From the IMG/VR virus record IMGVR_UViG_3300035145_003993, positions 124,001-188,000 of that record: a stretch of DNA of 64,000 nucleotides; one strand, given 5' to 3'. The translations under genes and the position numbers were made by a program. The notes beneath the pieces were generated by a model, which was given only the letters and a program-made list of their open reading frames with translations, had not been told where the DNA came from and searched no databases. This document shows positions 38,838-63,927 of this stretch, one piece after another; positions within the stretch are counted from its first letter, which is position 1; each line of letters begins with the position of its first letter.

Positions 38838-39254
38838 TTATTCTTTGTATTGTTCAACAATAATAGAAGACTGTTTAAGAATACAAACTCCTGACATATC
38901 TCTATATTCTTCTTTGTATACAACCTTCTTGATTCCACTATTAATAATTGCCATAGCACAGTTTTCGCAAGGACTTAATGTTATATACATTACCTTATCT
39001 TTTGGATTATTATAATCAAGTTTTAAAAGAGCATTTATTTCAGCATGCAACAATCCGCTACATCCAGGTTCACTAGATTTAGGTTCGTTTAGCATTCCAG
39101 AAGCTCGTCCATTATATCCTAAAGAAAGTACTTGTGTGTTATCTGACGTTACTATAAGTGCTCCAACTTTAAAATCTGGATGATGACTTCTTTGTGCAAT
39201 TGTTTCTGTCATTTTCATCCATATTTTATCCCATGAGGGCCTATTTATATTCAT
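38838..39254 (-). CDS. dCMP deaminase
   Basis: KVGALIV, GYNG, LHAEINA, SPCENC. Confidence 0.9.
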   Translation of the reverse strand: MNINRPSWDKIWMKMTETIAQRSHHPDFKVGALIVTSDNTQVLSLGYNGRASGMLNEPKSSEPGCSGLLHAEINALLKLDYNNPKDKVMYITLSPCENCAMAIINSGIKKVVYKEEYRDMSGVCILKQSSIIVEQYKE

Positions 39255-40637: not shown

Positions 40638-41498
40638 TTAAGACAATATTGCTTTGACATAATCTTTAATTAATTTGTGAGCATTTATAACTGTTTTACC
40701 TTGTACTCTTGACATCGTTAAAGAGTTAATAATCATGTTTCTATTAGCCAAACTAAGTTGATCAGGTGAAAGTATAAACTGCCTAAAACATTCTGCAAAA
40801 AACTCTCTTTCATCTGTAGATCCATATTCTGAAGGCATGTGTTTCATAATTGACTCAATCATGTTTTCTATTTTAGATAATGGTGTAAACTTATCAGATA
40901 ACTCATAATCTTTACAAATTTGAGAAGAAATACTAGAAAAGCCACCTTCAGAATTATTATCAAGAAAGTCAGCAAAATCATAAAATGATTCTTCAGCATC
41001 GTTTAAAAGTTTTTCGTTTCTTTCATCATCATTATTGTTTTCTATTATATCTTTTATAGACTTAAGCTCTCTAATAATATTTGTATAAGTTTCTCCTATT
41101 AATGTTATATACTCACTTGAATCTGATGAAACAAAATTAACGTGTATACAATGACCTATTTCATGTACTAAAGTGTTTATAAGTTGTTCTTCATTTTTAA
41201 ATTTACTTAAATCAAAAACAATAGCTTTAATATCAGTTTCTAAAAAAGCTTTCCAGTTATGTAAAGCTGATTTAAAATTTTTATCAATTTCAGCTCTTTC
41301 TTTATTACCCTTAACAATGACAAGACTTTTAAACAATTCTGATAATGGTGTGTTTATTCTGAACTGTTTAAATTTAATATTAACGTTTTCTAACCCACTA
41401 ATCAAATTATTTGTCATATAAAAATCATCTTCTGCATTTTTTGAAAAATAAACTTTTATACCATAATAGTTTTCTATTCTCGTAAATTCAATATTCAT
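40638..41498 (-). CDS. Zincin metallopeptidase-like protein
   Basis: VHEIGHCIH and YGSTDEREFFAECF. Confidence 0.75.
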   Translation of the reverse strand: MNIEFTRIENYYGIKVYFSKNAEDDFYMTNNLISGLENVNIKFKQFRINTPLSELFKSLVIVKGNKERAEIDKNFKSALHNWKAFLETDIKAIVFDLSKFKNEEQLINTLVHEIGHCIHVNFVSSDSSEYITLIGETYTNIIRELKSIKDIIENNNDDERNEKLLNDAEESFYDFADFLDNNSEGGFSSISSQICKDYELSDKFTPLSKIENMIESIMKHMPSEYGSTDEREFFAECFRQFILSPDQLSLANRNMIINSLTMSRVQGKTVINAHKLIKDYVKAILS

Positions 41499-42103
41499 AT
41501 ATCACCTAACTTGATTAAATGTCTAATTAAATTATTATCTTTCTCTTTAAAAGTCGTATAATGTTTTGCACAACGTGGCTCGTACATTCCTTTTGAACCA
41601 ACTCTCTCTTCAGCAGATGCATTATTTATATCAAACATAGCTTCAGTAAAATAAGCATCTTGATCACAATCAGTACAGACTGCTGGGCATATTTCTATTT
41701 TTGTTGCCCAAGGCATTATATTTTTTATATTCTCAAAAGGTACCTCGTTTGCGTCTAATTGAATTGATGACACAATTATATTAATACCTTTACGATATAA
41801 AGAAATTAAAACAGAATCAATATCATGTATCATAAATGCTTCATCTACAGCAATCACTGTATTCGAATTATACATGTCTTCATTGACATAGCACAATATT
41901 TCTTCAGCATGATTAATACAAAATGCAGGATATGTTGCTCCTGTATGTGTGCTTATAGCTTCTTTCGTATAACGATTATCTCTTTTAGCTTTAAATGCTA
42001 TTACTTTACGACCTTTATATAAAGATCGGTCTATATCTGACATTAGTTTTGTCGTTTTAGATCCGAACATAGGCCCTGTATATATTTTAAATGTTGGATT
42101 CAT
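41495..42103 (-). CDS. tdk: Thymidine kinase (type II)
   Basis: GPMFGSKT, VDEAFM, CxxC...YEPRCxxH zinc site. Confidence 0.92.
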   Translation of the reverse strand: MNPTFKIYTGPMFGSKTTKLMSDIDRSLYKGRKVIAFKAKRDNRYTKEAISTHTGATYPAFCINHAEEILCYVNEDMYNSNTVIAVDEAFMIHDIDSVLISLYRKGINIIVSSIQLDANEVPFENIKNIMPWATKIEICPAVCTDCDQDAYFTEAMFDINNASAEERVGSKGMYEPRCAKHYTTFKEKDNNLIRHLIKLGDI

Positions 42104-42201: not shown

Positions 42202-43092
42202 TCAAGGTACGATATAAGCTGACCTAATATTAATTGTAAGTTCGATATCTACATCTTCTGGTAAAGAAATCTCACCAGCCGCTCTTACACTAAGTATCTT
42301 AAGAAATTCATAATCTGTCCATAAATCTTTTAAAACATTAGACTGTTTAAGAGTTACATCAACATTTAAAGATTGATTTCTCCAAAGAAGATGAACGAAT
42401 GAAATATTTTTATTTCCAGAATATGAAAAATTCCTATTATCTAATTTATTTTTTTTGCGTGAATTACTTAAACCTGATCTTTCTAGAAATATTCTATTAG
42501 ATAATTTATCTATAATTTGATTATAATATTTATTTTTTTCGGGATTATTTAATATTGTGTAATCAATATTATTGATGTCGATTTTTTCTTTACATTTTAT
42601 GTCTAATAGTTCATTTTTTCCGCTCTTTATCACTAAAGATTTTATTAATTCTTGCGTAGGAATTTCGTTTAAAGAATTAATAAAAGAAATAGATTTTTGG
42701 CAATTTTCTTCAAGATTTTCACTTTCTATAAGTAAAACATTTGGATAATATTTTAAATTTGATTTAAGCAAATCTTCATAATATTTTCTTACTATTAGTA
42801 TGCTATTTTCATCTTGACATTCATCACCTCTGATTTTTAATCTTTCTAAGATTGTTTTTTCACTAGGTAATAAAACAATATAAAGTATGTCAAGTCTATT
42901 TAGTTCTTTTAAAAGTTTATCATACCAAATCGATTCTATTCCTCTATCATAGAGTTTTGAATAAACAATCATTGACATACAACTTCTATCTTGAATATTA
43001 TAGATATAACCTGTTTCTTTATGAATTTTATTAAATAATGTAGTTTTACCACTACAGTCAGGTCCTTCAATAATAATATGTTGAAATCTCAT
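42202..43092 (-). CDS. Thymidylate-kinase-like domain fused to a degenerate thymidylate-synthase-fold domain
   Basis: IIEGPDCSGKTT, QDRS; C-terminus DNR...ISFVHLLWRNQSLNVDVTLKQSNV..DLWTD...IRSAYIV. Confidence 0.7.
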   Translation of the reverse strand: MRFQHIIIEGPDCSGKTTLFNKIHKETGYIYNIQDRSCMSMIVYSKLYDRGIESIWYDKLLKELNRLDILYIVLLPSEKTILERLKIRGDECQDENSILIVRKYYEDLLKSNLKYYPNVLLIESENLEENCQKSISFINSLNEIPTQELIKSLVIKSGKNELLDIKCKEKIDINNIDYTILNNPEKNKYYNQIIDKLSNRIFLERSGLSNSRKKNKLDNRNFSYSGNKNISFVHLLWRNQSLNVDVTLKQSNVLKDLWTDYEFLKILSVRAAGEISLPEDVDIELTINIRSAYIVP

Positions 43093-46444: not shown

Positions 46445-46463
46445 AATTATTCCTTTTTATTAG

Positions 46464-46492
46464 AATATAATACAATTAGTTAATATTTACAC
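46464..46492 (-). promoter_or_regulatory. Phage promoter GTGTAAA-N16-TATATT for the dnaE C-fragment
   Basis: -35 lies in the last codons of the endonuclease gene. Confidence 0.65.
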
Positions 46493-47426
46493 TTTCATTA
46501 ATTAAATCAATTGTATTATCAATTTCATTTTCCCATATAATCAAGTAGTTATAGTTTCTTTTTTTTGCTATCTTCATTTTGTAAGAATCAGCATTCCAAA
46601 TATCACCTGCTTTTATTTTTCCTCTTGGGAAATCAAGAATGCTATTTTCATTATATAGAGAAGGGTGTGCGTGCCAAAATAGACCATGGCATTCAATGAT
46701 TAAATTAAACTTTGGCAGATAAAAATCATATATGTAACATCTTTTGTTGTATAATAATTCATCTTTTGTCAAATTAATTCGATATTGAATAGAATAGTCA
46801 ATGTTATTTTCTCTTAATAATCTTTCAATTCTTTTTTCTGTTTTAGGTTGTGATGTTTTTTTAAGAGCACCAATTGCACCTTTAACAGCTCTTTCTGAAA
46901 TTATTGCATTTGCATTATCCTTACTTAATCCTTTCTTAAGCCAAAACTCAATGCAAAATGGAGAATTTGATCGTTTATAGTTAGATAAACTTTCTTTTGC
47001 ATCTTCAATATTTTCCGTTTTTTCTATCCAATACTCTAAAGTTTGTTTTTGGTTGTAAGGTTTACCTGACTTTTTTCTAGTTTTAACTGTTCCTTTTTGT
47101 CCTTTTAAAGAAGTCTTCAAATAGTAACTTTCAATTTCTTTTATTGAAGTGTTTTTTGGAAATTTAAACTGACTTCTGAATGCTGTTGAAGTTTTTTGAT
47201 TATCTACATGAAGCTTAAAACCGATTTTGTCTTTTAAAAGAATAGAAAAAGTTTGCTGTGATATATTTAACTCATTAAAGCATTTTCTATTGTCACGATT
47301 AATCATTTGATATAACATTGAAAACGAGTAAAGTTTATTAATAAAACCTTGTATTTCTTCTTTTGAGTAATAAGAAAAAAGTATTTCTTCTCTAATTTTC
47401 CATATATTTGTTTTTTTTGTTTTCAT
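46476..47426 (-). mobile_element. Free-standing Vsr-like homing endonuclease between the dnaE halves
   Basis: C-terminal YDFYLPKFNLIIECHGLFWH...IIWE; repeated EYWIEK/EFWLKKG segments. Confidence 0.85.
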
Positions 47427-47463
47427 TATATTATCCTCCTAGGCACATATTATATATTCTGCT

Positions 47464-48381
47464 TCAGAGGTTAATATTAATAATTATATCACCTTTAACA
47501 ATATCTTTTGTATCAATCCATCCTTTGTCTTTAACAAGAACACGATGATCAGGTGTAAGTTTGATTTCGTTACCTTCTTTGTCTTTAATTCTCATAAGCT
47601 TAGCACCTCCTCGGGTTTTGTCACCCCAGATTACTTTTTTAAATTCAGCTTTGCTAGTATATTCATTATAAGAAAGAACTTGGATTTCTTCACCTTTATT
47701 AAATCTTTCTACAACTTCTTTAATAGATAGATTTCCAGATGAAGTTTGTAAAGTTGTGTCAGGATGAAGACAAGCTGTAGATATGTGTAATCCTTCACCA
47801 TGTTCTTGAAGCATTTGAAAATCAATACGTGGGTATCTATAAAAACCATATTTATACGATTTTTTAACTAAAGTAAATAAATTGTGAAGACCTTTTTGGT
47901 TTTTTGCTGTAACTACCAAATGATATCTTCTTTTCCACTCATCTTTAAGGATATCAACATTTTTTGTTTCATCTTCGTCTTCAACAACTAATCCGCCACT
48001 TTCATCATCTGCGTCAATATCAACTTTTTCTTTTGATTTCCTTTCAGCAGCAGCGGCAGATTTTGCGTCTTTTACTGCTTGTTTGTGAGCAGCATATTCT
48101 TCAGACCATTGTTGAAGTGAAGGAACAAAATAAAATTCAACTCCATAAATTTGTCTATAATTCCTTCCTGATTTTTGCATTCTAATTGTATGAGATCTTG
48201 CATGAGCAAGACCATTACCGTTACCATGGTCTGTTAGTGCCCATGCATCCATACCCTGAGATTCAGACAAAACAAAATCAATATGATCAGATGGGTATCC
48301 TAATCCATCGAATGTTGAAAACGTGCTGTGTGCATGAAGACCGACAAATCTATCTGGTGGTGTTATTAAATCAATAGACAA
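47464..48381 (-). CDS. dnaE: DNA polymerase III alpha, N-terminal PHP domain plus N-intein
   Basis: LHAHSTFSTFDG, ALTDHG, IYGVEFY, YHLVV, ISTA|CLHPDT. Confidence 0.95.
   Translation of the reverse strand: MSIDLITPPDRFVGLHAHSTFSTFDGLGYPSDHIDFVLSESQGMDAWALTDHGNGNGLAHARSHTIRMQKSGRNYRQIYGVEFYFVPSLQQWSEEYAAHKQAVKDAKSAAAAERKSKEKVDIDADDESGGLVVEDEDETKNVDILKDEWKRRYHLVVTAKNQKGLHNLFTLVKKSYKYGFYRYPRIDFQMLQEHGEGLHISTACLHPDTTLQTSSGNLSIKEVVERFNKGEEIQVLSYNEYTSKAEFKKVIWGDKTRGGAKLMRIKDKEGNEIKLTPDHRVLVKDKGWIDTKDIVKGDIIININL
47467..47772 (-). mobile_element. Split intein N-fragment (102 aa) of DnaE
   Basis: Block A CLHPDT, block B LTPDHRVL, GW...GD. Confidence 0.93.
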
Positions 48382-50136: not shown

Positions 50137-50367
50137 CTAAGTCTCAGATTTAGTTACCCACAGACCGTCTTGATTTTCTAAATCCATTGTTTCTCTAGAC
50201 GATCCATTTAAGTAAACAATTAGACCTTTAACAAAGTAATGATCTTGAATAATTTCTGTAACTAAACAGTTATTTTTTATCCTTTCACCATAAAAAAATA
50301 TATCAATCATGTCACCTTCTTTTAACTGTGATACTTCGTGTATTTCATTTTTATAATTACTGGACAT
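50137..50367 (-). CDS. Small SH3/KOW-like protein
   Basis: LKEGDMIDIF...CLVTEI. Confidence 0.6.
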   Translation of the reverse strand: MSSNYKNEIHEVSQLKEGDMIDIFFYGERIKNNCLVTEIIQDHYFVKGLIVYLNGSSRETMDLENQDGLWVTKSET

Positions 50368-51538
50368 TGATTTTAGGTTTTCCCCATCTAAGTGTTATTT
50401 GTGTATTGTTATTTAACATGTTTGTGCAAATATTAAAAGGTTCTACGTCATAGAATTTTAAAATCTTATAAAGATCATCATACAAATAATCTATTCCTTC
50501 TTCCAAGATTTGGGTACCATTAAAAACATTTAAATCACCTTCAGCAATTACAGGACCTATCCTACACATTATCTCTTCTATAATTGCATTAAATGCTGAT
50601 TCAACTTGATTTGCATTAACAACGAAAGAGAATTCATTAGGAATTGTATTGAGTGTGTTTCCGCTTATAGACTGTAGTGCGCTTGTATTTGCATTGTCTA
50701 CACCTAAAGTATATACAGTAATACAAGGATCTATTGCTGTAGAGTAAATGCAATTGTTATCATTAATATTTCTTATGTTGTTTTGAACAAAAGACTGAGA
50801 AGGCCCTGATCCTTCATTTGGCGATCCATCTGATATTAAGAGAATGTAATAAGACTCGTAGTTTGTCGTCTGTATTTGTGTCATTGCTTCTTGTAAAGGT
50901 GCTATAAAGTTTGTTCCACCTCCCGGACTTCTATTATTAACAATTGAAAGAACAGATTGCTTATGCTGTTGATTTTTTCCTATACTTGAAGAAACTATTA
51001 TATTACTATTGTATAATATAACAGAGTAACTTAAATTAAAATCAGAGTTAACAAATTGACTAACTGTATCTCTAAGTTGAACTATTCTGTTTCCACTCAT
51101 TGAACCACTATAATCTAAAAGCATTATTACAGCTGCATCTATTAAGTCAACGTCATGAACTTCTTCAGGGACAGTTATTATAACTGACTTGGTAGTTTGT
51201 CCGCGTCCTGGGTTATAAGAAGAAGTTATTCCGTATTTTCTATTACAATAGTTTTCAACACTACACTCTAGTCCTAGATCTATACATTGAAAGTTTGGTG
51301 TAACGTTAGTTGAAAGTGACGAAGCGCAATTATTTAAAAAATTAGGTGTACAAATTTCTTCAGTACTATTTGTCTCAATAATAGAAATTCCTAGATTTAC
51401 ACTACAAGAATCTAAAACTTGTTTTTCTTCCAATATGTTTAAAGATATTCTACCGTATTGTATTGTTATAAATGCTAAAGTTGATAACACAGCAGACAAT
51501 AACATAATAGTTAGTGCTGCAAATCCTTTGTTTTTCAT
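50357..51538 (-). CDS. TadG/PilY-like pilin-leader protein with VWA domain
   Basis: KG|FAAL prepilin-like N-terminus and TM helix; LDYSGSM MIDAS, GGTNF, LISDG, VYTLGV. Confidence 0.7.
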   Translation of the reverse strand: MKNKGFAALTIMLLSAVLSTLAFITIQYGRISLNILEEKQVLDSCSVNLGISIIETNSTEEICTPNFLNNCASSLSTNVTPNFQCIDLGLECSVENYCNRKYGITSSYNPGRGQTTKSVIITVPEEVHDVDLIDAAVIMLLDYSGSMSGNRIVQLRDTVSQFVNSDFNLSYSVILYNSNIIVSSSIGKNQQHKQSVLSIVNNRSPGGGTNFIAPLQEAMTQIQTTNYESYYILLISDGSPNEGSGPSQSFVQNNIRNINDNNCIYSTAIDPCITVYTLGVDNANTSALQSISGNTLNTIPNEFSFVVNANQVESAFNAIIEEIMCRIGPVIAEGDLNVFNGTQILEEGIDYLYDDLYKILKFYDVEPFNICTNMLNNNTQITLRWGKPKINVQ

Positions 51539-51581: not shown

Positions 51582-52352
51582 TTACAAATTAGACTTTTTT
51601 AGATAAATAAGATGTCTTGTACCATGATAATTTTTATTTTCTATATTATCAATAGTCCAGTAATGATTTGTTTTTTTAATGTTTCTATAAAAATCTTTCA
51701 TTAATAAAACGTCTATATTAACGCCTTGATTTTTTAATATATCAACAGCTAATAAGTTTGAATTAAATTTTCTATCTCTACGAATAGCCTTTAATTCAAC
51801 ATATTTATCTTCATCAGGATGGTAAAAATCTGGCGTATATTGCTTGTCTCTTCCTGCATAATTTACAGTAAAAGTTTTATGTTCATAAATATAAGGCTTA
51901 TTTGTTGCTTCGCACCATCTTGCATAATCTGCCTCTAATCCTGATTTGAAAAAATAATTACTTGGTAAATCTCTTCTAAATCCTAATCTTCCATTTGAAG
52001 GTATTTCGTGTAAACCACTACTTTGAGCTTTATATTGGCAATCTTTACTACAATATTTAGTAGCTTGTCCTATTGGCTTTTGATATGATTTTCCACAAAA
52101 ATTACAATTTAAATCGATTCTTTCATGACGATTTTCTTTTAAATAACATTCTCGTCTACAATATTTTTTATCTCTTTTAGCTTTAAATTTATTGTTACAA
52201 GAAAGACAATTTTTATAAACATATTTTGAAGAATTTTTGTCTTTACAGACCTTTGAACAAAACTTTGATGAAGAAGCTCTTGATGCTGGTTTTTTATAAA
52301 TAGATTTACACTCTTGACACGTTAACTCTACTTGATTACTTTTTCTAGGCAT
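51582..52352 (-). CDS. Zinc-finger-repeat PD-(D/E)xK endonuclease, probably free-standing homing type
   Basis: Three CxxC...(F/Y)CSxxC-type repeats; FKSGLE...YTPDF...VELK. Confidence 0.75.
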   Translation of the reverse strand: MPRKSNQVELTCQECKSIYKKPASRASSSKFCSKVCKDKNSSKYVYKNCLSCNNKFKAKRDKKYCRRECYLKENRHERIDLNCNFCGKSYQKPIGQATKYCSKDCQYKAQSSGLHEIPSNGRLGFRRDLPSNYFFKSGLEADYARWCEATNKPYIYEHKTFTVNYAGRDKQYTPDFYHPDEDKYVELKAIRRDRKFNSNLLAVDILKNQGVNIDVLLMKDFYRNIKKTNHYWTIDNIENKNYHGTRHLIYLKKSNL

Positions 52353-52417: not shown

Positions 52418-52627
52418 TTATAAGACATTAAAAGACATTATATTGTAAGGAACAATTTCAATTTCATTATTAATTAACAAGTAAATCATTGCATAAAAAT
52501 TATTATCTTTTTTAATGTCTATTACTAAACCTACTTTTTCTTTTTCGTTCGAATATAAAAAATTATATTTAATTATTTGACCTATTTTTAAATCTAAAAT
52601 TAATTTTTTATTATTCTTAAACTCCAA
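52418..52627 (-). CDS. Small SH3/KOW-like protein
   Basis: LKIGQIIKY...KVGLVIDI. Confidence 0.6.
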   Translation of the reverse strand: MEFKNNKKLILDLKIGQIIKYNFLYSNEKEKVGLVIDIKKDNNFYAMIYLLINNEIEIVPYNIMSFNVL

Positions 52628-53411
52628 TGACTTGTCTTTCTTTTACCCAATGTGTAGTTCTATTATCTGGAGTTATTTCTTTAATTACTTTATATTTGTT
52701 ATAATCTCTTTTTCTACCATAAACAACAAAACCTTGTGTAGCAGAACCAGATTCACCGTCAAAAGTATAATAGCTTTGAATTGTAGCTCCTTGCTGGTTG
52801 TATGACTTATTTATTACAAATCTAATTGCTTTGTCTAGTGTTACTAGGTTTTCGTCTGTTAAATCTTTTATAAAAGAATAAGGATTAATACATGAATACC
52901 ATAAAGACTCTGCTTTAATATAATTTCCAATTCCAGAAATTATATTTTGATTCATTAGAACACAACATATATTTTTATGATTATACTTTCTTAAAATATT
53001 GACAAAATTATTAGGTGGATTAGAAAGCATATCAGGACCTATAGACTTAAGTTTTTTTTCTAAGTCTAATCTTTTTTTAATTTGAAAAGTGCCAAAATTT
53101 CTGGTGTCATTAAAGTAAAGAGTATCATTCTCATAGAAAGTAAACTCTATTCTTGAATGTTTTGACTTTTCTCGAGACCAATTACCAGTCATTCCTAAAG
53201 TATTAAAAACAATTACATCACCTAAATCCATCCAGATGAACTTACCTTTGCAATTAAAGGATTCAATTTCTTTACCAAATAAAGATTTTATTCCTGGTAT
53301 TGGCTTTTTTACATATCGTCCACTCAATACATTAACAGATTTAATCATATAGTATCTAAAGTTTTGATTTAGTCTTTCAACAAATAGTTTAACTTCAGGT
53401 CCCTCTGGCAT
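52617..53411 (-). CDS. Fpg/Nei DNA glycosylase with zincless finger
   Basis: MPEGPEV, GKFIW, LGMTG, LYFNDTRNFG, GIGNYIKAE; no C-terminal Cys cluster. Confidence 0.92.
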   Translation of the reverse strand: MPEGPEVKLFVERLNQNFRYYMIKSVNVLSGRYVKKPIPGIKSLFGKEIESFNCKGKFIWMDLGDVIVFNTLGMTGNWSREKSKHSRIEFTFYENDTLYFNDTRNFGTFQIKKRLDLEKKLKSIGPDMLSNPPNNFVNILRKYNHKNICCVLMNQNIISGIGNYIKAESLWYSCINPYSFIKDLTDENLVTLDKAIRFVINKSYNQQGATIQSYYTFDGESGSATQGFVVYGRKRDYNKYKVIKEITPDNRTTHWVKERQVIGV

Positions 53412-53628: not shown

Positions 53629-53938
53629 TAAATACCTCTAATATATCTTCATCTCTAAAATATACTTTTTCATTATTTTCTCCTAATGCAACGTAATAGC
53701 CTAAAGGAAAATTCTTTGTTTGAAAATGTATAGGAATTGCTGTTATTTTTTCATTAGATTCTTTATCAATAAATGATATTAAATAAGACTTTTCGAAAAA
53801 AAATCTTCTTTCAACCATTGTGTTATAAAGATCTTCGTATTTTGCTTTTTTATAGTGTTTTGTATCTTTAAAAGACCAAAATTTAAGTGTATCTTTATTC
53901 AATCGCGTCTTCATAAGGTTCTTCAATAAATTCACCAT
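53618..53938 (-). CDS. Hypothetical protein
   Basis: ORF track; start probably MKTRLN. Confidence 0.55.
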   Translation of the reverse strand: MVNLLKNLMKTRLNKDTLKFWSFKDTKHYKKAKYEDLYNTMVERRFFFEKSYLISFIDKESNEKITAIPIHFQTKNFPLGYYVALGENNEKVYFRDEDILEVFSES

Positions 53939-54344
53939 TTTCTACTATTCTGTCAAGGTAATCTTCTAATTGTTCAAATGAAGTACAGACCTTAATACCA
54001 CTTCTTGCTAACATTAAATTAAATTTAGCACCTTCAGGTAAACCTGCACAAAAATAAATAATAGGTTTGTTAAATGCAAAAGCATAACCAGCTTCCCAAA
54101 TTGTTCCAATATCTTTGTCTCTAGTGTTTACTAACAAAAAGTCAGCTGTTTGAATGTGGTGAAGATTACCTGTAAAAGTTTCGTCTTGCACACTTTTTGG
54201 TGCATTTGGAGGACAAATAAAAATTCTGCGAGGTGAAGCTAATTCAAAATTATTTGATCGATCATCAAAAATTTTTTCAAGTTGAGTAAGTTCTTCGTCT
54301 TGTGTAGGATTAAACCAACCACTAGCTAAATAAATCTTTTTCAT
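53895..54344 (-). CDS. Nucleoside 2-deoxyribosyltransferase / dNMP N-glycosidase family
   Basis: IYLASGWF, ADF...DIGTIWEAGYA...KP; start MKKIYL at 54344. Confidence 0.88.
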   Translation of the reverse strand: MKKIYLASGWFNPTQDEELTQLEKIFDDRSNNFELASPRRIFICPPNAPKSVQDETFTGNLHHIQTADFLLVNTRDKDIGTIWEAGYAFAFNKPIIYFCAGLPEGAKFNLMLARSGIKVCTSFEQLEDYLDRIVENGEFIEEPYEDAIE

Positions 54345-54425
54345 TAAAATATTCCTTTTATAATAATTTTTTCTAAGTTTGTAATTGTTTTTCAATAAAG
54401 TTTACTATTTTTAATAACTTTAAAA

Positions 54426-55391
54426 TTAATTGTTGAATTGTTTTTTAACTTGATTTATGGCTCTTACATCATCATTCCACATCCTTGTAAAGATTTTTTC
54501 TTCACCAGATTTATTGCCGTTTAATTCTTCGCGGCGACAAGGGTAAATTGAATCTTCTTCATTGAATTCAAACAAATCGTTTTTAGGCTCTGGATGATAT
54601 AAATTAGTTCCTTTTGAAGTAAAAGTACCATCTGCTTGTTTAACTCTAAATGTTCTAACATAATGCATGTCAGGTTTTTCAAAATCTAAGCAAGTTGCAA
54701 CTTCAGGAATTCTTTCAACAACTAGTCTTGCTATTTTAGTAGCAATAATATTATCAACCTCAGGCTGAATTTGTACATCTTGTCTTTGTTTAATAAGACC
54801 AATTAAATCTTTTAAATTAAACCTTGCAATATAAAATGTTTCGATAGATTTTGGCATAATAACTCTAGCGTCCATTAAAGAAATTAGTTTTGAATCTACC
54901 ATATCAGAATATAATTGTTTTGCAGCAGCAGCAACTTCAATAAATCTATGGTAAAAATCAGAATTTTCAATAGACTCTGGAACTAAAATATTATCGTGTC
55001 GTAGGTCTCTATCACCTGTGCATTGAGCAGCAAATGATCCTGCTCTGTGTCTAATTAAGTGTGTTACGGTTTGAGTATCAATACCACTTATCCTAAAAGT
55101 AAATCCTAAACATTCCATAGGCGTTGGTAAGGCTCTAAAATTTAGTACGTCTTGAAGGTTTTGTGAGGCCTCTTCAGGTGAAGCATTATTAAAGTCAGTT
55201 TCAAAAGGTCGATCAGCCCATGTTGCCTTGGTCATATTCCAAGCTATTTCTTGTGCTTGCTTTTGTGTTGGAGCATCAATCACTTCAATTTTAAGTGATT
55301 CTAAATTGTTAATATAGTTTGTAACAGGAACTTCGTTAAACTTTAAAAGCATAGGAAGTTGAATCTTATCTAAATCATTATTAATTGGCAA
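54426..55391 (-). CDS. Divergent ThyX-like flavoprotein
   Basis: RHRAGSFAAQC (Cys at the RHRx7S position), DARVIMP, NLKDL...QR. Confidence 0.8.
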   Translation of the reverse strand: MPINNDLDKIQLPMLLKFNEVPVTNYINNLESLKIEVIDAPTQKQAQEIAWNMTKATWADRPFETDFNNASPEEASQNLQDVLNFRALPTPMECLGFTFRISGIDTQTVTHLIRHRAGSFAAQCTGDRDLRHDNILVPESIENSDFYHRFIEVAAAAKQLYSDMVDSKLISLMDARVIMPKSIETFYIARFNLKDLIGLIKQRQDVQIQPEVDNIIATKIARLVVERIPEVATCLDFEKPDMHYVRTFRVKQADGTFTSKGTNLYHPEPKNDLFEFNEEDSIYPCRREELNGNKSGEEKIFTRMWNDDVRAINQVKKQFNN

Positions 55392-55418
55392 ATTTTTTCT
55401 CCTTGTTATTTACCATTC

Positions 55419-55447
55419 ATTATAAAATTAAAAATTTTATTTTACAC
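55419..55447 (-). promoter_or_regulatory. Phage promoter GTGTAAA-N16-TATAAT
   Basis: Exact consensus, upstream of the ThyX-like gene. Confidence 0.75.
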
Positions 55448-56116
55448 TAAATTATTCTTTTTACTAATCATATCTTCTAATTGTTCTAGTAAAACAATAT
55501 TTTCTTTAAAAATTAAATTTTCTTTTTTTATTTTTGCAACTGCTTCATCAAATGTTAATTTATTTAAATCTTGATATGTTTTTAACACTTCATAATCACT
55601 ATCTAATTCTGCTTTAATTGAATCAGACCTTTGTATGTCTATGTAAAAAATATTTCTATTAATTGCATATTGTATTTCTTTAACTAAATTTAAAAATATA
55701 TCTTTTTTAAATGAAAAAATATTTTCTATATTAAGATTAGTAATAGAAGAATATTCAATTATTCCTTCATCATTTTTTTTGTCTGACTGAAAATAGAGTT
55801 TGCAATATTTATTTTTAATAAAAAAGAAAGAATAAGAATTTACTATTTGTAAATCGATTTCAATTGTAAATTCATCGCAAAAATCTAAAGAGTGATTAAA
55901 GTTTGTTTGATATTTTTTACTAAATAACTGTGTATAGTTGCTTGTAAACGTTAAGTACATTATTCCTGGATCAATAACTAAAGTCATATTTCCAGTTTGA
56001 ATGAGACCTAAAGAATAAATAATATCGTATTCGATTGTGTCCCAAACTTTACTTAAAAATTCATAAGATCTAAATTTCTTGTTAGTATAAAAATCTAGAT
56101 CTTCATGAAAAAACAT
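55442..56116 (-). CDS. Hypothetical protein
   Basis: ORF track. Confidence 0.6.
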   Translation of the reverse strand: MFFHEDLDFYTNKKFRSYEFLSKVWDTIEYDIIYSLGLIQTGNMTLVIDPGIMYLTFTSNYTQLFSKKYQTNFNHSLDFCDEFTIEIDLQIVNSYSFFFIKNKYCKLYFQSDKKNDEGIIEYSSITNLNIENIFSFKKDIFLNLVKEIQYAINRNIFYIDIQRSDSIKAELDSDYEVLKTYQDLNKLTFDEAVAKIKKENLIFKENIVLLEQLEDMISKKNNLV

Positions 56117-56117
56117 T

Positions 56118-56504
56118 TTAATAACCTTTTTGTAGCCTTTTTCTAATTATTTCGTCTTTAATATTAAATGCATTATAAAATTCATTAACATCAACGCCGA
56201 TTAAAATCATTAATGAGAAAAAATAATTAAAAGCATCTACTATTTCTTCTAAAAATTCATCTCTATCAATTTCAGGCATATCTGTTTCTCGATGAGGCTT
56301 CCAATTTTTTAAATGTTGAAGTGCCTCAAACATTTCTTCAACTCCTTTTAAAGCTGTTTCACGTAATAAATTTTGATTTTCTTTTTTTGAAATATCTACA
56401 GGCCATTCGTTTGTATAAGAATCAGGAAACTTATCTTGAATAAGTTTCATAAACGATTGTCTTTTATTAAAGATTTCAACAAGTTTATCATTTTCTAATG
56501 TCAT
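56118..56504 (-). CDS. All-alpha NTP pyrophosphatase (dimeric dUTPase/MazG-like)
   Basis: EEMFEAL...WKPH...EEIVDAFNYF. Confidence 0.85.
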   Translation of the reverse strand: MTLENDKLVEIFNKRQSFMKLIQDKFPDSYTNEWPVDISKKENQNLLRETALKGVEEMFEALQHLKNWKPHRETDMPEIDRDEFLEEIVDAFNYFFSLMILIGVDVNEFYNAFNIKDEIIRKRLQKGY

Positions 56505-56506
56505 AT

Positions 56507-56737
56507 TTATTGTACTTTTTCTTCTTGAGTTTCGCTTAACTTTTCTTGTGAATTAGATAACATTTTATTAATTTGTTCGTTAAAAATTTCTTGATATTGT
56601 TCGTTAACTGTAAGTTTGTTTTCTTCATTAATTTCTAATGATACCATCCTGAGATGGTCAACAATGTCTGTTCCAGTTAAGATTGCCATTTGAATTAGTT
56701 TAGCAATATGTGCTATTGTAGTATCATGTAATAACAA
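56507..56737 (-). CDS. Hypothetical protein
   Basis: ORF track. Confidence 0.6.
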   Translation of the reverse strand: MLLHDTTIAHIAKLIQMAILTGTDIVDHLRMVSLEINEENKLTVNEQYQEIFNEQINKMLSNSQEKLSETQEEKVQ

Positions 56738-56747
56738 AATTTTCTCC

Positions 56748-57110
56748 TTAAATTACTACTGGTGATTTGCTTAATTTTTGTGTTATAATATCTGAATCGT
56801 GATCTAATGCTTTAAGCATAGAAATACCTTCTATCGTTTTAATTGATTTTAAAACTGTTATGAATTTATCTTTTCCTTCAACAAATTTTTCAATATATGA
56901 AACGTTTAATTCAATTATTCTATGACCATTTGAAGATACAATATCTGAAACTGGTCTTGTTTGTCTGACTGTTACGATTCCTGGTAAGGCCCTCATGTCA
57001 GTCATAATATCAAGAACTGTAGGGTCTTCTCTATCTTCTATTTTAATTCTACATCTAATTAAAGTATTAATTAAGTCTTCATGTCTTTCAACGAGTAATT
57101 TTTTCTTCAT
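56748..57110 (-). CDS. Hypothetical protein
   Basis: ORF track, GGAG RBS. Confidence 0.65.
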   Translation of the reverse strand: MKKKLLVERHEDLINTLIRCRIKIEDREDPTVLDIMTDMRALPGIVTVRQTRPVSDIVSSNGHRIIELNVSYIEKFVEGKDKFITVLKSIKTIEGISMLKALDHDSDIITQKLSKSPVVI

Positions 57111-57145
57111 TAATAATCTCCTTTATAATGTAGTAATTATTTCTT

Positions 57146-57868
57146 TTACTCGTGATTATTAATATAACTGTTAACAGTTTCTGGCCAAAGATCTTTAATA
57201 ATATCTAACATTCTAAATGCTAATTGTTGAATTTCCCATTGAGCTCCTTCATGTGTTCTTAAATTTATAAACTTTAATATGTTATTTAAATTCGCAGAAG
57301 CGTAATATTCTGTATAAAGATTTTGTGGTAAAATTCCACGCGCTTGTTCTCTGCATATACCATTGTTTACTAAATCATCAAATAATTTTAAAGAATTTTT
57401 GTGATAATTTTTAATAACATTCGATGCTTTAGTTTTAATTTTAACGCTACTTACTGCAGAGTCAATTTCTAATATAGGATCAATTAATTCATCTTGATTT
57501 GAAGATTGTCTATTTGATTTGTGTTGAGTTCTAAATTGATTAGGTTCATAAAATTCTATATTAGAATCTGTATATCTTCTAGAGATTTCGTTGTATGACC
57601 AAGTTCTGTGTCTATGATGTTGTGATCGAACAAATAATGGAACTTTAATTCTAAAAGTTGCAAAATTATGTTCTAAAGTAGATGTATGTTTATGTTTAAT
57701 TAAATAATTAATTAACTTTTTATCTTTATTATCAAGACTTTCTTTGTGAACTCCGAATGATACCCTTGCTGAATTTACTATTGTAATATCTTCGCCAACA
57801 TATTGAACTAATTCTATTTTTCCTATGCCATCTTCATACAGATTTTTTTCAATAGTATCTATTTTCAA
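57146..57868 (-). CDS. thyX: Flavin-dependent thymidylate synthase
   Basis: NSARVS, HTSTLEH, RHRTWSYNEISRRY, EQARGILP. Confidence 0.95.
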   Translation of the reverse strand: MKIDTIEKNLYEDGIGKIELVQYVGEDITIVNSARVSFGVHKESLDNKDKKLINYLIKHKHTSTLEHNFATFRIKVPLFVRSQHHRHRTWSYNEISRRYTDSNIEFYEPNQFRTQHKSNRQSSNQDELIDPILEIDSAVSSVKIKTKASNVIKNYHKNSLKLFDDLVNNGICREQARGILPQNLYTEYYASANLNNILKFINLRTHEGAQWEIQQLAFRMLDIIKDLWPETVNSYINNHE

Positions 57869-57873
57869 ATTTA

Positions 57874-58638
57874 TTATCCTTCACTTTTTTGATTATTTAA
57901 TGGCTTTTCAAAGTGATAAAAAGCTCCTCCTGTGTGACCGTCGTGAATTAGAGTTGCAAAACACCTTGCAACAGGACCACCTAATTTATCCTTAAGTTTT
58001 TTATAAAAAGGATGATTTTTAATTTCTTTTGGAATTCTCCACGAAGAAGATGTAGAATATCCTGTATCATATTTAATAAAGTCAAACCCTGTATCTGTAC
58101 CTAGCTTAATAAAATTTTCATGAACTGGAAAGTTAACATGTCCAATTTTATGTTCCTTTTCAGGTGAATGAAATTGTGTGTCTTGTGTATTCATTGGGAA
58201 TCCTAGTACCATTCTCCCACCAGGTCGAAGAACTCTATAAAGCTCTTTCATAATATATGGATAATTGTGGTCTTCAATATGTTCAAAAACTTCTGACGAA
58301 ACCATGATATCAAACATTTCGTCACTATATGGGAGTCCTGTTGTGATATCATGTTGCTTTAATTGAAATTTGTTACTTTGCTTAGACCAAGCCATATCGA
58401 TATATTTTTGTTGATAGTCAATACCATAATACTCAGTAAAAACAAAAAGACTTTTCATAAATGTCCAGAGTCTACCATTATAACATCCAATATCAAGAAG
58501 TTTTGGCTGATTTTTTCCATCATATCCATTTGAAGAGCACCACTTACGAACAGCTTCAACTAAATAATTTTGAGAAAAAACAATAAATTGACAATCAATT
58601 AAAGTTTGTGGGTGAGACTTTTTTTGTATCGCAGCCAT
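57874..58638 (-). CDS. Class I SAM-dependent methyltransferase
   Basis: LLDIGCYNG, FDIMVSSEVFEH, RVLRPGG. Confidence 0.88.
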   Translation of the reverse strand: MAAIQKKSHPQTLIDCQFIVFSQNYLVEAVRKWCSSNGYDGKNQPKLLDIGCYNGRLWTFMKSLFVFTEYYGIDYQQKYIDMAWSKQSNKFQLKQHDITTGLPYSDEMFDIMVSSEVFEHIEDHNYPYIMKELYRVLRPGGRMVLGFPMNTQDTQFHSPEKEHKIGHVNFPVHENFIKLGTDTGFDFIKYDTGYSTSSSWRIPKEIKNHPFYKKLKDKLGGPVARCFATLIHDGHTGGAFYHFEKPLNNQKSEG

Positions 58639-62865: not shown

Positions 62866-63927
62866 TTATCCTTGACAGCTTAAACATTCATCAGGATCAG
62901 CGAAATCTTGTAACTTATCTTGCTTAACCTTCTGACTAACCTTTTCAGCTGAAGCTCCTGCGTTTGTCCTTAGATAATATAATCCTTTTAACTTCTTTTT
63001 CCAAGCTCTAATATGTACTGCATTAACATAAGATTTATCAGTACCAGCGGGAAAGAATAAATTAACACTTTGACCTTGGCAAATAAATTCTTGTCTATCA
63101 CCTGCGTGATCTATAATCCATCTTTGATCTAATTCAAATGCTGTTTTAAATACTTCTTTATGCCAATCTGACATGTATTCAAGGTGTTGAACAGATCCTT
63201 CTGCTAAGATAATAGATTTCCATTGTTCATTCATCCAAGATTCAATATCAATTTTTTCTACATTGTCAGCATACTCTCTTAAAACTTTTTCTAAGTGATG
63301 ATTTTTCACTAAATAAGAACCTACTCTTGTTCTATGTGTATATGCATTACTTTTCCAAGGTTCAATAGATGGTGAAGTCCCTGCAATAATAGAAGAATTA
63401 GCATTTGGAGCAATTGCTAATAGATGAGAATTCCTAACTCCGTAACCAGATCCATCAGGACATTCACCTTTTTTAATCGCCAACTCTTTTGTACGCTGTT
63501 TTGCTTTTTCTTTAATTAATGAGAATATATTAATATTTGTTGCTTTTGCAATCCCTGATTCAAACGGAATATTTTTTGATTGAAGATAGGAGTGAAATCC
63601 CATTGCACCTAAACCAAGTGATCTTTCTCTCATAGCGGAAAATTTTGCTTTGTGCAAATAGTCAGGAGCATTTTCAATAAAAAATTGTAGGACGTTATCT
63701 AAATACTCTATTAAATCTTCAACAATATTTGTGTCTTTCCATTCATCAAACTTTTCAACATTTAGTGAGCTTAAACAACATACTGCACTTCTTTCAGGAG
63801 ATGTTGCCAAATGGATCTCATTACAATTGTGAACGAGCATGTTATTTGCAAAAAAATTTTTATTGTCTTTAACAGTTATGTCAAAAACAGGTTCTTTTGT
63901 TTCTCTTTTAATTATTTTTAATCCCAT
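62866..63927 (-). CDS. nrdA: Ribonucleotide reductase alpha subunit, C-terminal part, preceded by a C-intein
   Basis: VHN|CNEI, VCCLSSLN, RSLGLG, AIAPNANSS, ICQGQS, GLYYLR, C-terminal CxxC. Confidence 0.93.
   Translation of the reverse strand: MGLKIIKRETKEPVFDITVKDNKNFFANNMLVHNCNEIHLATSPERSAVCCLSSLNVEKFDEWKDTNIVEDLIEYLDNVLQFFIENAPDYLHKAKFSAMRERSLGLGAMGFHSYLQSKNIPFESGIAKATNINIFSLIKEKAKQRTKELAIKKGECPDGSGYGVRNSHLLAIAPNANSSIIAGTSPSIEPWKSNAYTHRTRVGSYLVKNHHLEKVLREYADNVEKIDIESWMNEQWKSIILAEGSVQHLEYMSDWHKEVFKTAFELDQRWIIDHAGDRQEFICQGQSVNLFFPAGTDKSYVNAVHIRAWKKKLKGLYYLRTNAGASAEKVSQKVKQDKLQDFADPDECLSCQG
63826..63927 (-). mobile_element. Split intein C-fragment (34 aa) of NrdA
   Basis: VFDITVKDNKNFFANNMLVHN|C, with its own ATG after an upstream in-window stop. 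Confidence 0.88.

Follow-up and report, generated by a model that had tools for sequence, protein, structure and literature searches.

We analysed a 64,000-nucleotide stretch of a marine jumbo phage (IMG/VR record IMGVR_UViG_3300035145_003993, positions 124,001 to 188,000; hereafter the window), in which two genes of the Thy1 fold lie close together within a set of nucleotide-processing genes, all on the minus strand (Table 1). One encodes a canonical flavin-dependent thymidylate synthase, ThyX, and the other a longer, divergent ThyX-like protein, which we refer to as ThyXpar, directly upstream of a gene for a nucleoside 2-deoxyribosyltransferase (NDT). Individual loci among those compared with the window are designated by L numbers.

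Table 1. Genes and features of the window discussed here.
Coordinates	Strand	Length	Feature	Properties
38838..39254	-		dCMP deaminase	PF00383, 81.6 bits; a source of dUMP
41495..42103	-		Thymidine kinase (TK)	PF00265, 113.8 bits; supplies the phosphorylation step after an NDT reaction
42202..43092	-		'TS-fold kinase'	N-terminal Tmk-like P-loop kinase fused to a C-terminal truncated ThyA-fold domain related to T4 dCMP hydroxymethylase; in the window this domain has lost the catalytic residues (Cys to Asn, Arg-Ser to Lys-Gln, His to Tyr, Arg-Arg to Arg-Asn), whereas most clade relatives keep Cys, R-S-S-N, the cytosine-type Asp and His
52617..53411	-		Fpg/Nei-family DNA glycosylase	Syntenic with the module in the window clade and in the L066 and L124 clades
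53895..54344	-	149 aa	NDT of a rare subtype	PF05014, 1e-12; ATG start with AAAGGA upstream; Tyr5, Asp78, Glu84 (WEAG), Asn109 (FNLM) and C-terminal Glu invariant across lineages
54426..55391	-	321 aa	ThyXpar	TTG start preceded by AAGGAG; RHR at residues 114-116; R176 (T. maritima R147) and R203 (T. maritima R174) kept; L88 replaces the folate-stacking His; C124-T-G-D127-R128 replaces S-x-R-Y; N- and C-terminal extensions of about 40 and 90 aa
55020..55022	-		Cys124 of ThyXpar
55442..56116	-	224 aa	Protein of unknown function	Directly upstream of ThyXpar; confident predicted model (pLDDT 92) with no PDB fold match
56118..56504	-	128 aa	All-alpha NTP pyrophosphatase (MazG/dimeric-dUTPase-like)	phrog_12184, 6.9e-16; Pfam dUTPase_2 below its cutoff; EEMFE and EEIVD acidic motifs; with the upstream 76-aa gene, a conserved partner in distant clades
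56507..56737	-	76 aa	Protein of unknown function	Always precedes the MazG-like gene, including in the L066-type and L124-type clades
56748..57110	-	120 aa	Protein of unknown function	Conserved in the window's clade only
57146..57868	-	240 aa	Canonical ThyX	All canonical motif residues present
57874..58638	-		Class I SAM methyltransferase (Methyltransf_11)	Sporadic passenger, not a core part

The canonical ThyX matches Pfam Thy1 with 161.9 bits and TIGR02170 with 173.7 bits, well above the cutoff of 87.9, and contains the motifs HTSTLEH and RHRTWSYNEISRRY. ThyXpar matches Pfam Thy1 with 65.5 bits (E 7e-18) but reaches only 49.3 bits with TIGR02170, below the curated cutoff, and the corresponding motifs read directly from its sequence are ALPTPME and RHRAGSFAAQCTGDR. 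Several observations show that ThyXpar is a real gene: we found 1063 database relatives, the best of them 81-98% identical, and 556 representatives at the 50% identity level, and an AlphaFold2 model has a pLDDT of 95.7, with the top 50 listed PDB matches all being ThyX-family structures. The dN/dS against relatives is 0.08-0.12, although dS is near saturation, and dN is lower than for the canonical ThyX of the same genomes. The family is large and was seen here almost only in viruses; Geobacillus phage GR1 (protein UDY80709) is the only close cultured carrier, and we found no paper describing this subfamily.

The earlier note had described a canonical ThyX beside a longer paralogue with altered motifs, together with an NDT, a dUTPase-like gene and a SAM methyltransferase, and this observation is correct. 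The NDT is more likely the 149-aa frame than a 166-aa ORF with a TTG start. We found no support for the note's statement that the paralogue has its own promoter, as a scan of the sequence gave 38 promoter-like sites against 36.8 expected from shuffles, and the TATAAT in the 50-nt AT-rich gap is unremarkable in 26% GC DNA. Co-transcription of ThyXpar with the NDT, also proposed there, is plausible in that the gap is 81 nt, no terminator is predicted within it and the adjacency is conserved, but transcription was not measured here.

To examine how far ThyXpar departs from ThyX, we aligned the two profile to profile. The alignment (hhalign, 98.4% probability at 18% identity) places Cys at the motif Ser (S88), and Gly and Asp at the invariant Arg (R90) and Tyr (Y91), with an Arg two residues later; N85 is also lost, and H53 falls on Leu. 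The ligand-binding core is nevertheless kept, including the four key arginines (T. maritima R78, R80, R147 and R174), the FAD-site Asn and the Q-x-E. Among 63 diverse members, R114 is invariant and R116, R176 and R203 are at least 90% conserved. The solved T. maritima S88C mutant was the best PDB sequence match, and the Ser-to-Cys change alone therefore says little; furthermore, Cys124 and Asp127 are not conserved in the wider family or in the divergent ThyX-like genes that occupy the same genomic slot in L141, L143, L146 and L149, and they cannot be the key to a shared new mechanism. The fold is that of canonical ThyX (Thy1, PF02511; T. maritima TM0449, M. tuberculosis ThyX), with Foldseek E 3e-11 to 4e-9, target-normalised TM-score 0.65-0.79 and 14-20% identity, but ThyXpar has terminal extensions and neither library gives a full-length match, the query-normalised TM-score being at most 0.54 against PDB and 0.56 against BFVD. 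ThyXpar is a distinct ThyX-like lineage and not a copy of the phage's own ThyX.

We then compared gene neighbourhoods, an examination that the earlier note had put forward for its proposal. The NDT is directly downstream of ThyXpar in 56 of 57 loci of the window's clade, the one exception being truncated, and reciprocally 57 of 57 informative loci seeded with the NDT carry the ThyX-like gene. This NDT subtype occurs in only 25 of 50,697 phage records, with GR1 as the best hit, and pairwise identities of the two proteins correlate (r = 0.71). The SAM methyltransferase is present in only three of the ThyXpar-seeded loci, L003, L011 and, next to the NDT, L065. In many relatives a MazG-NT5C fusion gene, which is absent from the window, lies between the 224-aa gene and ThyXpar.

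The same partners recur in several unrelated lineages, across phages with DnaE, PolA and PolB replicases. These are a dUTPase_2/MazG-like all-alpha NTP pyrophosphatase, a 5'-deoxynucleotidase supplied by two unrelated folds (HAD-NT5C fused to a MazG domain, or HD/YfbR), a Tmk-like kinase, which is fused to the NDT in L059, L063 and L064, and a truncated ThyA-fold, dCMP-hydroxymethylase-like domain. The last is directly downstream of ThyXpar in GR1 and in L059-L063, with overlapping or nearly abutting reading frames in GR1, L059, L062 and L063, although in L061 it is a kinase fusion and in L060 a full-length MilA-like protein. GR1 also has an alpha-glucosyltransferase-like gene (phrog_2888, 6e-53) in the same cluster, a nitroreductase-type flavin reductase just upstream, and no canonical thymidylate synthase (TS) anywhere in its genome.

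In the window's clade a canonical TS accompanies ThyXpar. All 35 loci with at least 5 kb upstream carry one; 33 have ThyX, and L043 and L049 instead have a ThyA in the same slot (329.6 bits to PF00303 for L043). All 12 loci of the roughly 50% GC L065-L076 clade also have a separate canonical Thy1. However, 19 of 49 NDT-seeded loci with at least 5 kb upstream show no canonical TS within the fetched flank, and in the L059-L064 phages ThyXpar is the only uracil-type candidate seen within 10 kb.

The note's interpretation, a folate-independent flavoenzyme acting on another nucleotide and possibly making or removing a modified pyrimidine together with the NDT, the dUTPase-like enzyme and the TS-fold kinase, is partly supported. 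The distinct lineage, the very strong link to the NDT, and the recurrence of the dUTPase-like gene and the TS-fold kinase all hold, although the TS-fold domain of the window's own kinase fusion is catalytically degenerate. Folate independence is an untested inference; of the three residues mutated in the solved folate-complex structures (H53, E144 and R174, according to the PDB titles), only H53 is lost, with E144 corresponding to an invariant Asp and R174 retained.

Our preferred interpretation, which we hold tentatively and at somewhat less than even confidence, is that ThyXpar is a flavoprotein of the ThyX fold that still binds FAD and a pyrimidine 5'-monophosphate but is not the phage's thymidylate synthase. 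We propose that it puts a substituent other than the TS methyl group on C5 of a pyrimidine deoxynucleotide, or acts on a nucleotide other than dUMP, within a conserved pool-rerouting set. In this view, the all-alpha NTP pyrophosphatase and a 5'-deoxynucleotidase would strip canonical dNTP/dNMP down to deoxynucleosides, the dedicated NDT would swap the base, TK and Tmk-like kinases would re-phosphorylate, and ThyXpar, in many relatives together with a truncated dCMP-type ThyA-fold domain, would modify the monophosphate that then feeds phage DNA. The analysis itself establishes the fold, the retained and lost residues, purifying selection, apparent restriction to viruses, obligatory adjacency to the NDT, the recurrent partners and coexistence with a canonical TS, whereas it is by inference that we take ThyXpar to be catalytic, its substrate to be a pyrimidine dNMP, and its product to differ from dTMP and to end up in DNA. 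No assay exists, the chemistry being inferred from context only, and the sequence does not specify the substituent, for which hydroxymethyl, hydroxyl from O2, or oxidation of dTMP are candidates. There is precedent in phage TS-superfamily enzymes that perform unexpected flavin-dependent C5 hydroxylation (PMC13326640).

The main alternative, less likely but not excluded, is that ThyXpar is a second, highly divergent but genuine flavin-dependent thymidylate synthase. It may serve a uracil/deoxyribose salvage branch, in which a nucleotidase makes deoxynucleosides, the NDT puts uracil on deoxyribose, TK makes dUMP and ThyXpar makes dTMP, and it may use another reductant or be expressed at another time than the canonical ThyX. 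This is consistent with the retained arginines and FAD-site residues, with the TK and dCMP deaminase genes of the window, with the flavin reductase gene of GR1, with ThyXpar being the sole TS-like gene in GR1, and with the annotation of the more distant Pbunavirus and Carpasinavirus relatives as thymidylate synthase in their phages. In GR1 and the L059-L064 phages a T4-like set (dCTPase-like, dCMP-hydroxymethylase-like, dNMP kinase, glucosyltransferase) would be completed neatly if ThyXpar were simply the TS, and in GR1 and L060 it would lie next to a dCMP-hydroxymethylase-like protein, a dUTPase_2-like enzyme and a Tmk-like kinase. Some bacteria keep two thymidylate synthases (compare the titles of the C. 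glutamicum ThyX entries), and coexistence alone does not prove different chemistry. Against this are the lost canonical invariants and the score below the ThyX cutoff; moreover, in two jumbo-phage clades a canonical TS is retained in every sufficiently long locus, and is replaced by ThyA rather than lost, which argues that ThyXpar cannot cover TS function. There is also no evident reason why a plain TS should be locked to one rare NDT subtype.

It is unlikely, although possible, that ThyXpar is instead one part of a two-component enzyme, acting as the flavin (and possibly one-carbon or oxygen) carrier for the truncated ThyA-fold protein (mini-TS), which would bind and Cys-activate dCMP but lacks the folate/flavin-binding N-terminal part. 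Together they would make 5-hydroxy- or 5-hydroxymethyl-dCMP, to be phosphorylated by the fused or adjacent Tmk-like kinase. The positions of the mini-TS genes and the GR1 glucosyltransferase-like gene are in keeping with this. The mini-TS proteins keep Cys146, R166, the cytosine-type Asp177 and His207, but are only 150-220 aa long and lack in the alignment the first ~90 residues of ThyA, a region that includes the folate-binding part. Position 169 is Asn in GR1 and in most window-clade copies, the signature reported for 5-hydroxy-dCMP synthases (PMC13326640). However, there is no evidence of physical interaction, ThyXpar keeps its own nucleotide-binding arginines, and no mini-TS was detected near ThyXpar in L077 or in most L065-L076 loci. 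In the window the TS-fold domain is 12 kb away and degenerate, while ThyXpar stays under strong selection. A non-catalytic or regulatory role, as a dUMP/dTMP sensor or a scaffold of a phage dNTP-synthesis complex, is very unlikely, as the lost catalytic-loop invariants and large terminal extensions that could mediate protein contacts are set against FAD- and substrate-binding arginines conserved across very deep divergence, low dN/dS and consistent partners that are enzymes.

Two known ThyX-fold proteins are among the structural hits. The polyoxin enzyme PolB of Streptomyces (PDB 4p5b; PMC5954106) is a ThyX paralogue that coexists with a housekeeping TS and has been recruited to make a modified pyrimidine nucleotide, but it is bacterial, sits in an antibiotic gene cluster and still methylates uracil nucleotides (UMP/dUMP), whereas ThyXpar has a rebuilt substrate loop; we made no residue-by-residue comparison. 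The atypical ThyX of Corynebacterium glutamicum (PDB 3fnn, 3ge9), among the top structural hits, is described by its depositors as not required for thymidylate synthesis, but is cellular, has no NDT, nucleotidase or kinase context, and is only remotely related in sequence (14-16% identity).

The mildiomycin enzymes MilA and MilB and the T4 hydroxymethyl-dCMP pathway (gp56 dCTPase, gp42, gp1 kinase, glucosyltransferases) follow the same logic, in that a TS-superfamily C5-modifying enzyme is paired with an NDT-fold enzyme (MilB) or with a dNTPase, a dNMP kinase and a glucosyltransferase (T4). The partner TS-fold domains here match MilA (the L060 protein, 2.3e-15) and T4 gp42 (profile A5, 1.6e-6). 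No product is known here, however, the flavoenzyme has the ThyX rather than the ThyA fold, and the NDT keeps the nucleoside-type Asn (FNLM) rather than matching the nucleotide hydrolases DNPH1/Rcl well. The 5-hydroxy-dCMP synthases of RB69, DLP3 and RL38JI (PMC13326640) similarly do flavin/O2 chemistry at C5 and feed DNA glycosylation, and their D169N plus N177D signature is present in the GR1 mini-TS and in most window-clade TS-fold kinase fusions. They are full-length ThyA-fold proteins and the paper does not mention ThyX; participation of ThyXpar in this chemistry is speculation.

After GR1, the nearest cultured relatives are proteins annotated as thymidylate synthase in Pbunavirus (phage crassa gp59) and Carpasinavirus (XcP1 gp49). 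They score 90 and 103 bits respectively with the ThyXpar family profile, against 36 and 30 with a profile built from only 10 canonical ThyX of this phage group. Their function is also untested, and they are about 25% identical to ThyXpar, with no Cys-Thr-Gly-Asp motif and no NDT within the 5 kb fetched on each side. Their THQLVRTR-type motif resembles that of distant family members, and in both cases the gene is followed by a polynucleotide-kinase gene.

The stretch has 26% GC and belongs to the 211-kb contig IMGVR_UViG_3300035145_003993 of an uncultured marine jumbo phage; a megablast search of the region against 50,697 phage records found no match. All genes between 52.6 and 58.6 kb run on the minus strand. 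The ThyX paralogue (ThyXpar) is preceded by a canonical ThyX and followed by a nucleoside 2-deoxyribosyltransferase (NDT), and the motifs that the earlier note assigned to the two ThyX-like proteins are all present, confirming what it observed. The paralogue has a TTG start behind AAGGAG. A promoter and terminator scan gave no excess over shuffled sequences, and thus lends no support to the separate promoter that the note had proposed for this gene; expression, co-transcription and read-level signs of modification were not examined here. The 224-aa protein encoded just before the paralogue gave no Pfam, PHROG, NCBIfam, Atlas or PDB-fold match, despite a confident structural model.

Locations of the genes and loci discussed, with L numbers denoting loci compared with the window
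Sequence	Coordinates	Strand	Feature
Window	57874-58638	-	SAM methyltransferase
Window	57146-57868	-	Canonical ThyX
Window			Three small or unknown genes, one of which is the next entry
Window	56118-56504	-	MazG/dimeric-dUTPase-like gene, putative NTP pyrophosphatase
Window			224-aa protein of unknown function
Window	54426-55391	-	ThyX paralogue (ThyXpar)
Window	53895-54344	-	NDT
Window			Two small genes
Window			Fpg/Nei glycosylase
Window	42202-43092	-	Kinase fused to a truncated ThyA-fold domain
Window	43349-48381	-	DnaE-type polymerase in pieces: ORFs 47464-48381, 46476-47426 and 43349-46444
Window	62866-63927	-	C-terminal part of the ribonucleotide reductase large subunit
Window	23897-25528, 37558-38280, 50357-51538, 51582-52352	-	GroEL-type chaperonin, protein with an Fe/Mn superoxide dismutase C-terminal domain, VWA-domain protein, HNH-endonuclease-like gene
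L066	9074-9991		MazG-NT5C fusion
L049	6678-7604		MazG-NT5C fusion
L066	4734-5750		Glutamine-synthetase-like protein
L060	11039-11947		302-aa ThyA-fold protein, MilA-like
L141	8521-9462		Highly divergent ThyX-like protein
L001 / GR1 (OK896991.1)	23.9-36.7 kb and 40-41.3 kb		Nucleotide-metabolism genes of Geobacillus phage GR1

The paralogue is a real gene under constraint. It has more than 1000 relatives in a collection of 5.8 billion proteins, the nearest of which are 81–98% identical and come from ENA, JGI, Tara and Logan assemblies, and 556 representatives at the 50% identity level. It matches the Thy1 family (PF02511) at 65.5 bits against a cutoff of 24.8, an AlphaFold2 model built from 63 sequences has a pLDDT of 95.7, and all 50 listed PDB matches are ThyX-family structures, at 14–20% identity, although the BFVD viral library has no full-length match. 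It nonetheless scores only 49.3 bits against TIGR02170, below the curated equivalog cutoff of 87.9 for ThyX/FDTS (EC 2.1.1.148), whereas the canonical ThyX in the window scores 173.7. Compared with six relatives its dN/dS is 0.08–0.12, and its dN (0.12–0.14) is lower than that of the canonical ThyX in the same genomes (0.19–0.25); we note that dS is near saturation and that these ratios are therefore rough.

To determine which ThyX residues are retained, we compared the paralogue with Thermotoga maritima ThyX by HMMER alignment, with its own family alignments, and with canonical ThyX by profile-profile alignment (hhalign), and these agree. R78 (with H79), R80, the E144-equivalent acid, R147, the FAD-site N163, R174 and Q180-x-E182 are kept. 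The FAD-binding arginines (R78 and R80) and those that bind the substrate phosphate and activate the uracil (R147 and R174) correspond to R114, which is invariant, and to R116, R176 and R203, which are at least 90% conserved in 63 sequences. The folate-stacking H53 is replaced by Leu88, which is nearly invariant within the close family, N85 is Ser or Ala, and E86 is Ala. In the motif RHR-x7-S-x-R-Y the RHR is kept, but S88 is Cys124, R90 is Gly126, and Y91 is Asp127 followed by Arg or Lys, even though Ser, Arg and Tyr are invariant in our canonical ThyX set. Conserved extensions of about 40 aa at the N-terminus and about 90 aa at the C-terminus have been added; ligand docking was not performed, nor was it examined whether the extensions cover the folate site. 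The folate-independence inferred in the earlier note does not follow from these changes, as two of the three residues mutated in the solved folate complexes (H53, E144 and R174) are conserved. We also considered whether Cys124 and Asp127 might mark a cytosine-type nucleophile/acid pair, but this is weakened by their distribution; both are conserved in the close family, but not in about a third of the more distant members, and they are absent from very divergent ThyX-like genes that occupy the same genomic slot, between the MazG-type genes and the NDT, in loci L141, L143, L146 and L149. These slot-mates have TRGR instead of RHR, lack Cys-Thr-Gly-Asp, and keep only the four arginines and the ALPxPxE motif.

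Among 50,697 cultured-phage records only Geobacillus phage GR1 has a close homologue, with 43% identity to the window protein and 49% to the L060 type. The next nearest are the 'thymidylate synthases' of Pbunavirus and Carpasinavirus, which score higher with the paralogue profile than with a profile of 10 canonical ThyX proteins from this phage group. In both of these (phage crassa gp59–gp57, locus L087, and XcP1 gp49–gp48, locus L088) the ThyX-like gene is followed by a polynucleotide kinase/phosphatase gene and an exonuclease, a conserved pairing that is unexplained. Atlas clusters of look-alikes are 86–97% viral. A scan of one genome for each of 185,579 bacterial and archaeal species with a back-translated [SA]AQCTGDRD motif gave seven hits, none of them ThyX-like, which fits restriction to viruses but is limited to the exact motif. 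A search for related loci with one further sequence, P0163, returned no true relatives.

Neighbourhood analysis, which the earlier note had put forward as a way to examine its proposal, provides the main evidence on function. In 56 of 57 loci retrieved with the paralogue the NDT is directly downstream, the exception being truncated, and in 57 of 57 informative loci retrieved with the NDT the ThyX-like gene is directly upstream; in other clades the NDT lies 0.4–8 kb away. This NDT subtype is rare, occurring in 25 of 50,697 phage records with GR1 as the best hit, and pairwise identities of the two proteins correlate (r = 0.71 over 55 non-independent pairs). Weak relatives of the NDT occur in phages Carin-5 (PV155638.1) and LIS04 (OQ999172.1), members of the SP-15-like group with hypermodified thymidine; in Carin-5 the NDT is next to a putative ferredoxin oxidoreductase, and SP-15 itself has a 413-aa ThyX-fold 'thymidylate synthetase' (BFVD A0A127AWA5). 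By contrast with the NDT, the methyltransferase appears in only three of the loci retrieved with the paralogue.

The NDT matches PF05014 at 48.7 bits against a cutoff of 28.8, its best PDB match is 6evs (7.7e-9), and its WEAG Glu and FNLM Asn align to the Lactobacillus NDT 1f8x-type sequences. Y5, D78, E84 and N109 are invariant in eight lineages; in the L. leichmannii NDT the Glu is the catalytic nucleophile, and the Asp, Asn and Tyr hold the deoxyribose and base. The NDT keeps the Tyr, Asp, Glu and Asn of nucleoside-type transferases. Matches to the dNMP N-glycosidases DNPH1/Rcl are weak and partial (E 0.02–0.4, about residues 60–115), compared with 7.7e-9 over the full length for a true NDT, but the phosphate-site residues were not mapped and membership of this branch is left undecided. 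We observed a similar ambiguity for the putative all-alpha NTP pyrophosphatase, which matches phrog_12184 ('nucleotide pyrophosphohydrolase') at 6.9e-16 and has EEMFE and EEIVD acidic motifs, but scores 17.6 against dUTPase_2, below its cutoff of 22.9, and has no PDB sequence hit, such that its family placement is not settled by these data. Homologues in L060 and GR1 do pass the dUTPase_2 cutoff.

Other partners recur across clades. The all-alpha NTP pyrophosphatase-like gene, with a 76-aa gene before it, is present in the window clade and in the L066 and L124 clades, and dUTPase_2-like genes occur in L060 and GR1. A 5'-deoxynucleotidase is supplied by two unrelated folds, either an HD/YfbR enzyme, in L060, the P0124 contig and GR1, or a fusion of an all-alpha dUTPase_2/MazG-like domain with an NT5C-type enzyme, which lies directly upstream of the paralogue in many jumbo-phage loci but is absent from the window; this one polypeptide could take a dNTP down to a deoxynucleoside. 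A small Tmk-like kinase lies next to the paralogue in L077, is nearby in L060 and GR1, and is fused to the NDT in L059, L063 and L064. Finally, a truncated ThyA-fold domain (mini-TS) directly follows the paralogue in GR1 (phrog_35203), L059, L062 and L063, and is fused to the kinase in L061, L074, many NDT-seeded loci and the window.

In the PDB, the profile of this truncated domain matches only T4 dCMP hydroxymethylase (1.6e-6). Most copies keep the catalytic Cys146, R166 and H207 and the cytosine-type Asp177, and GR1 and most window-clade copies have Asn at position 169, the signature reported for flavin-dependent 5-hydroxy-dCMP synthases (PMC13326640). The window copy has lost the catalytic residues of the ThyA-fold pyrimidine C5 enzymes (dCMP hydroxymethylase and 5-hydroxy-dCMP synthase), with Cys replaced by Asn, Arg-Ser by Lys-Gln and His by Tyr, and only the cytosine-type Asp kept, whereas relatives at 52–58% identity (among copies P0276–P0346) keep all of them together with Asn169. 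Four catalytic residues have been lost together in the window, in copy P0273 (80–81% identical), and probably in the other close copies P0272, P0274 and P0275, a pseudoenzyme-like state that is nevertheless conserved. In L060 the domain is instead a full-length protein, next to the ThyX-like gene, that is most similar to the CMP hydroxymethylase MilA (2.3e-15), with Cys146, Asp177, Asp169 and Asn143; we predict that it is a (d)CMP hydroxymethylase and that this uncultured DnaE phage probably has modified cytosine.

GR1, with 31–34% GC, clusters an NDT, an HD nucleotidase, an alpha-glucosyltransferase-like gene, a Tmk-like kinase, a nitroreductase-type flavin reductase, ThyXpar, a mini-TS and a dUTPase_2-like gene, and elsewhere has a second NDT, TK, an Amidoligase_2 protein and a gamma-glutamylcyclotransferase, making it a good candidate for hypermodified DNA. 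The glutamine-synthetase-like protein of L066 sits just upstream of the canonical Thy1 in the roughly 50% GC clade, and this and the GR1 amidoligase are possible base-amidation enzymes.

All 35 loci of the window's close clade with at least 5 kb upstream carry a canonical TS, of which 33 have ThyX, and two (L043 and L049) have a ThyA in the same slot, with the L043 copy scoring 329.6 bits to PF00303. All 12 loci of the L065–L076 clade also have a separate canonical Thy1. We rejected gene dosage in an AT-rich genome as the reason for two TS-like genes, because the L066-type clade with both has 48–53% GC, although L065 itself has 35%. Replacement rather than loss of the canonical TS argues that the paralogue cannot do its job. 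Against this, 19 of 49 NDT-seeded loci show no canonical TS in the fetched flank, GR1 has no other TS at all, and the L060-type phages pair the paralogue with a dCMP-hydroxymethylase-like enzyme, where a plain TS would complete a T4-like set. The window also encodes TK and dCMP deaminase.

The earlier note's interpretation, that the paralogue acts on another nucleotide together with these neighbours, is partly supported. The analysis places the gene in a distinct, apparently virus-restricted branch of the ThyX fold that is functionally tied to an NDT-centred nucleotide module, whereas the substituent, the substrate and the fate of the product are all inferred. Our preferred but tentative reading is that it is a flavin-dependent modifier of a pyrimidine deoxynucleotide, by a reaction other than dUMP to dTMP. 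The strongest alternative, which we consider less likely, is a divergent true TS; conversion of dUMP to dTMP with CH2-THF and reduced FAD was not assayed. It is more doubtful still that the paralogue is the flavin component of a two-part enzyme with the mini-TS, and a non-catalytic binder is improbable.

A more far-reaching possibility, unlikely but consistent with these observations, is a widespread, so far undescribed viral pathway in which a ThyX-fold flavoprotein has left thymidylate synthesis and, alone or as the flavin component for a truncated dCMP-type ThyA-fold partner, makes a 5-substituted (hydroxy, hydroxymethyl or oxidised-methyl) deoxypyrimidine nucleotide, with a dedicated NDT, a 5'-deoxynucleotidase and an NTP pyrophosphatase recycling the displaced canonical nucleotide. 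If so, abundant marine jumbo phages and the cultured phage GR1 would carry a DNA base modification made by a new enzyme class. ThyX is a drug target and a textbook case of a one-reaction enzyme family. We found no published description of this subfamily; the closest precedents are the flavin-dependent ThyA-fold hydroxylases (PMC13326640) and PolB (PMC5954106), from an antibiotic pathway, the latter being the only neofunctionalised ThyX relative that turned up in the papers and structures searched. What differs here is a large clade of the same fold with a rebuilt substrate loop, found in this analysis almost only in viruses, with a fixed partnership with a rare NDT and a recurrent five- to six-enzyme nucleotide module in phages with unrelated replication machinery, including marine jumbo phages that recur in many ocean metagenomes. 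If the clade makes a modified pyrimidine, it adds a new biosynthetic entry point to phage DNA modification, with bearing on restriction and CRISPR evasion, on sequencing bias in viromes, and on enzymes for making modified nucleotides; if it is only a second TS, it still shows which 'invariant' ThyX residues are dispensable. Because GR1 is cultured, the question is open to direct test.

Two further window genes are associated with intein sequences. The DnaE-type polymerase is in pieces around an intein, with a PHP domain plus the N-terminal intein splicing part in one ORF (47464-48381), the C-terminal splicing part followed by Pol III alpha domains in another (43349-46444), and a separate 316-aa ORF with no family match between them; this looks like a split intein, or an intein with a free-standing endonuclease. 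The C-terminal part of the ribonucleotide reductase large subunit similarly begins with a C-terminal intein splicing motif (…VHNC), with the listed ORF beginning at 63927, whereas the relative L002 has an uninterrupted 595-aa gene.
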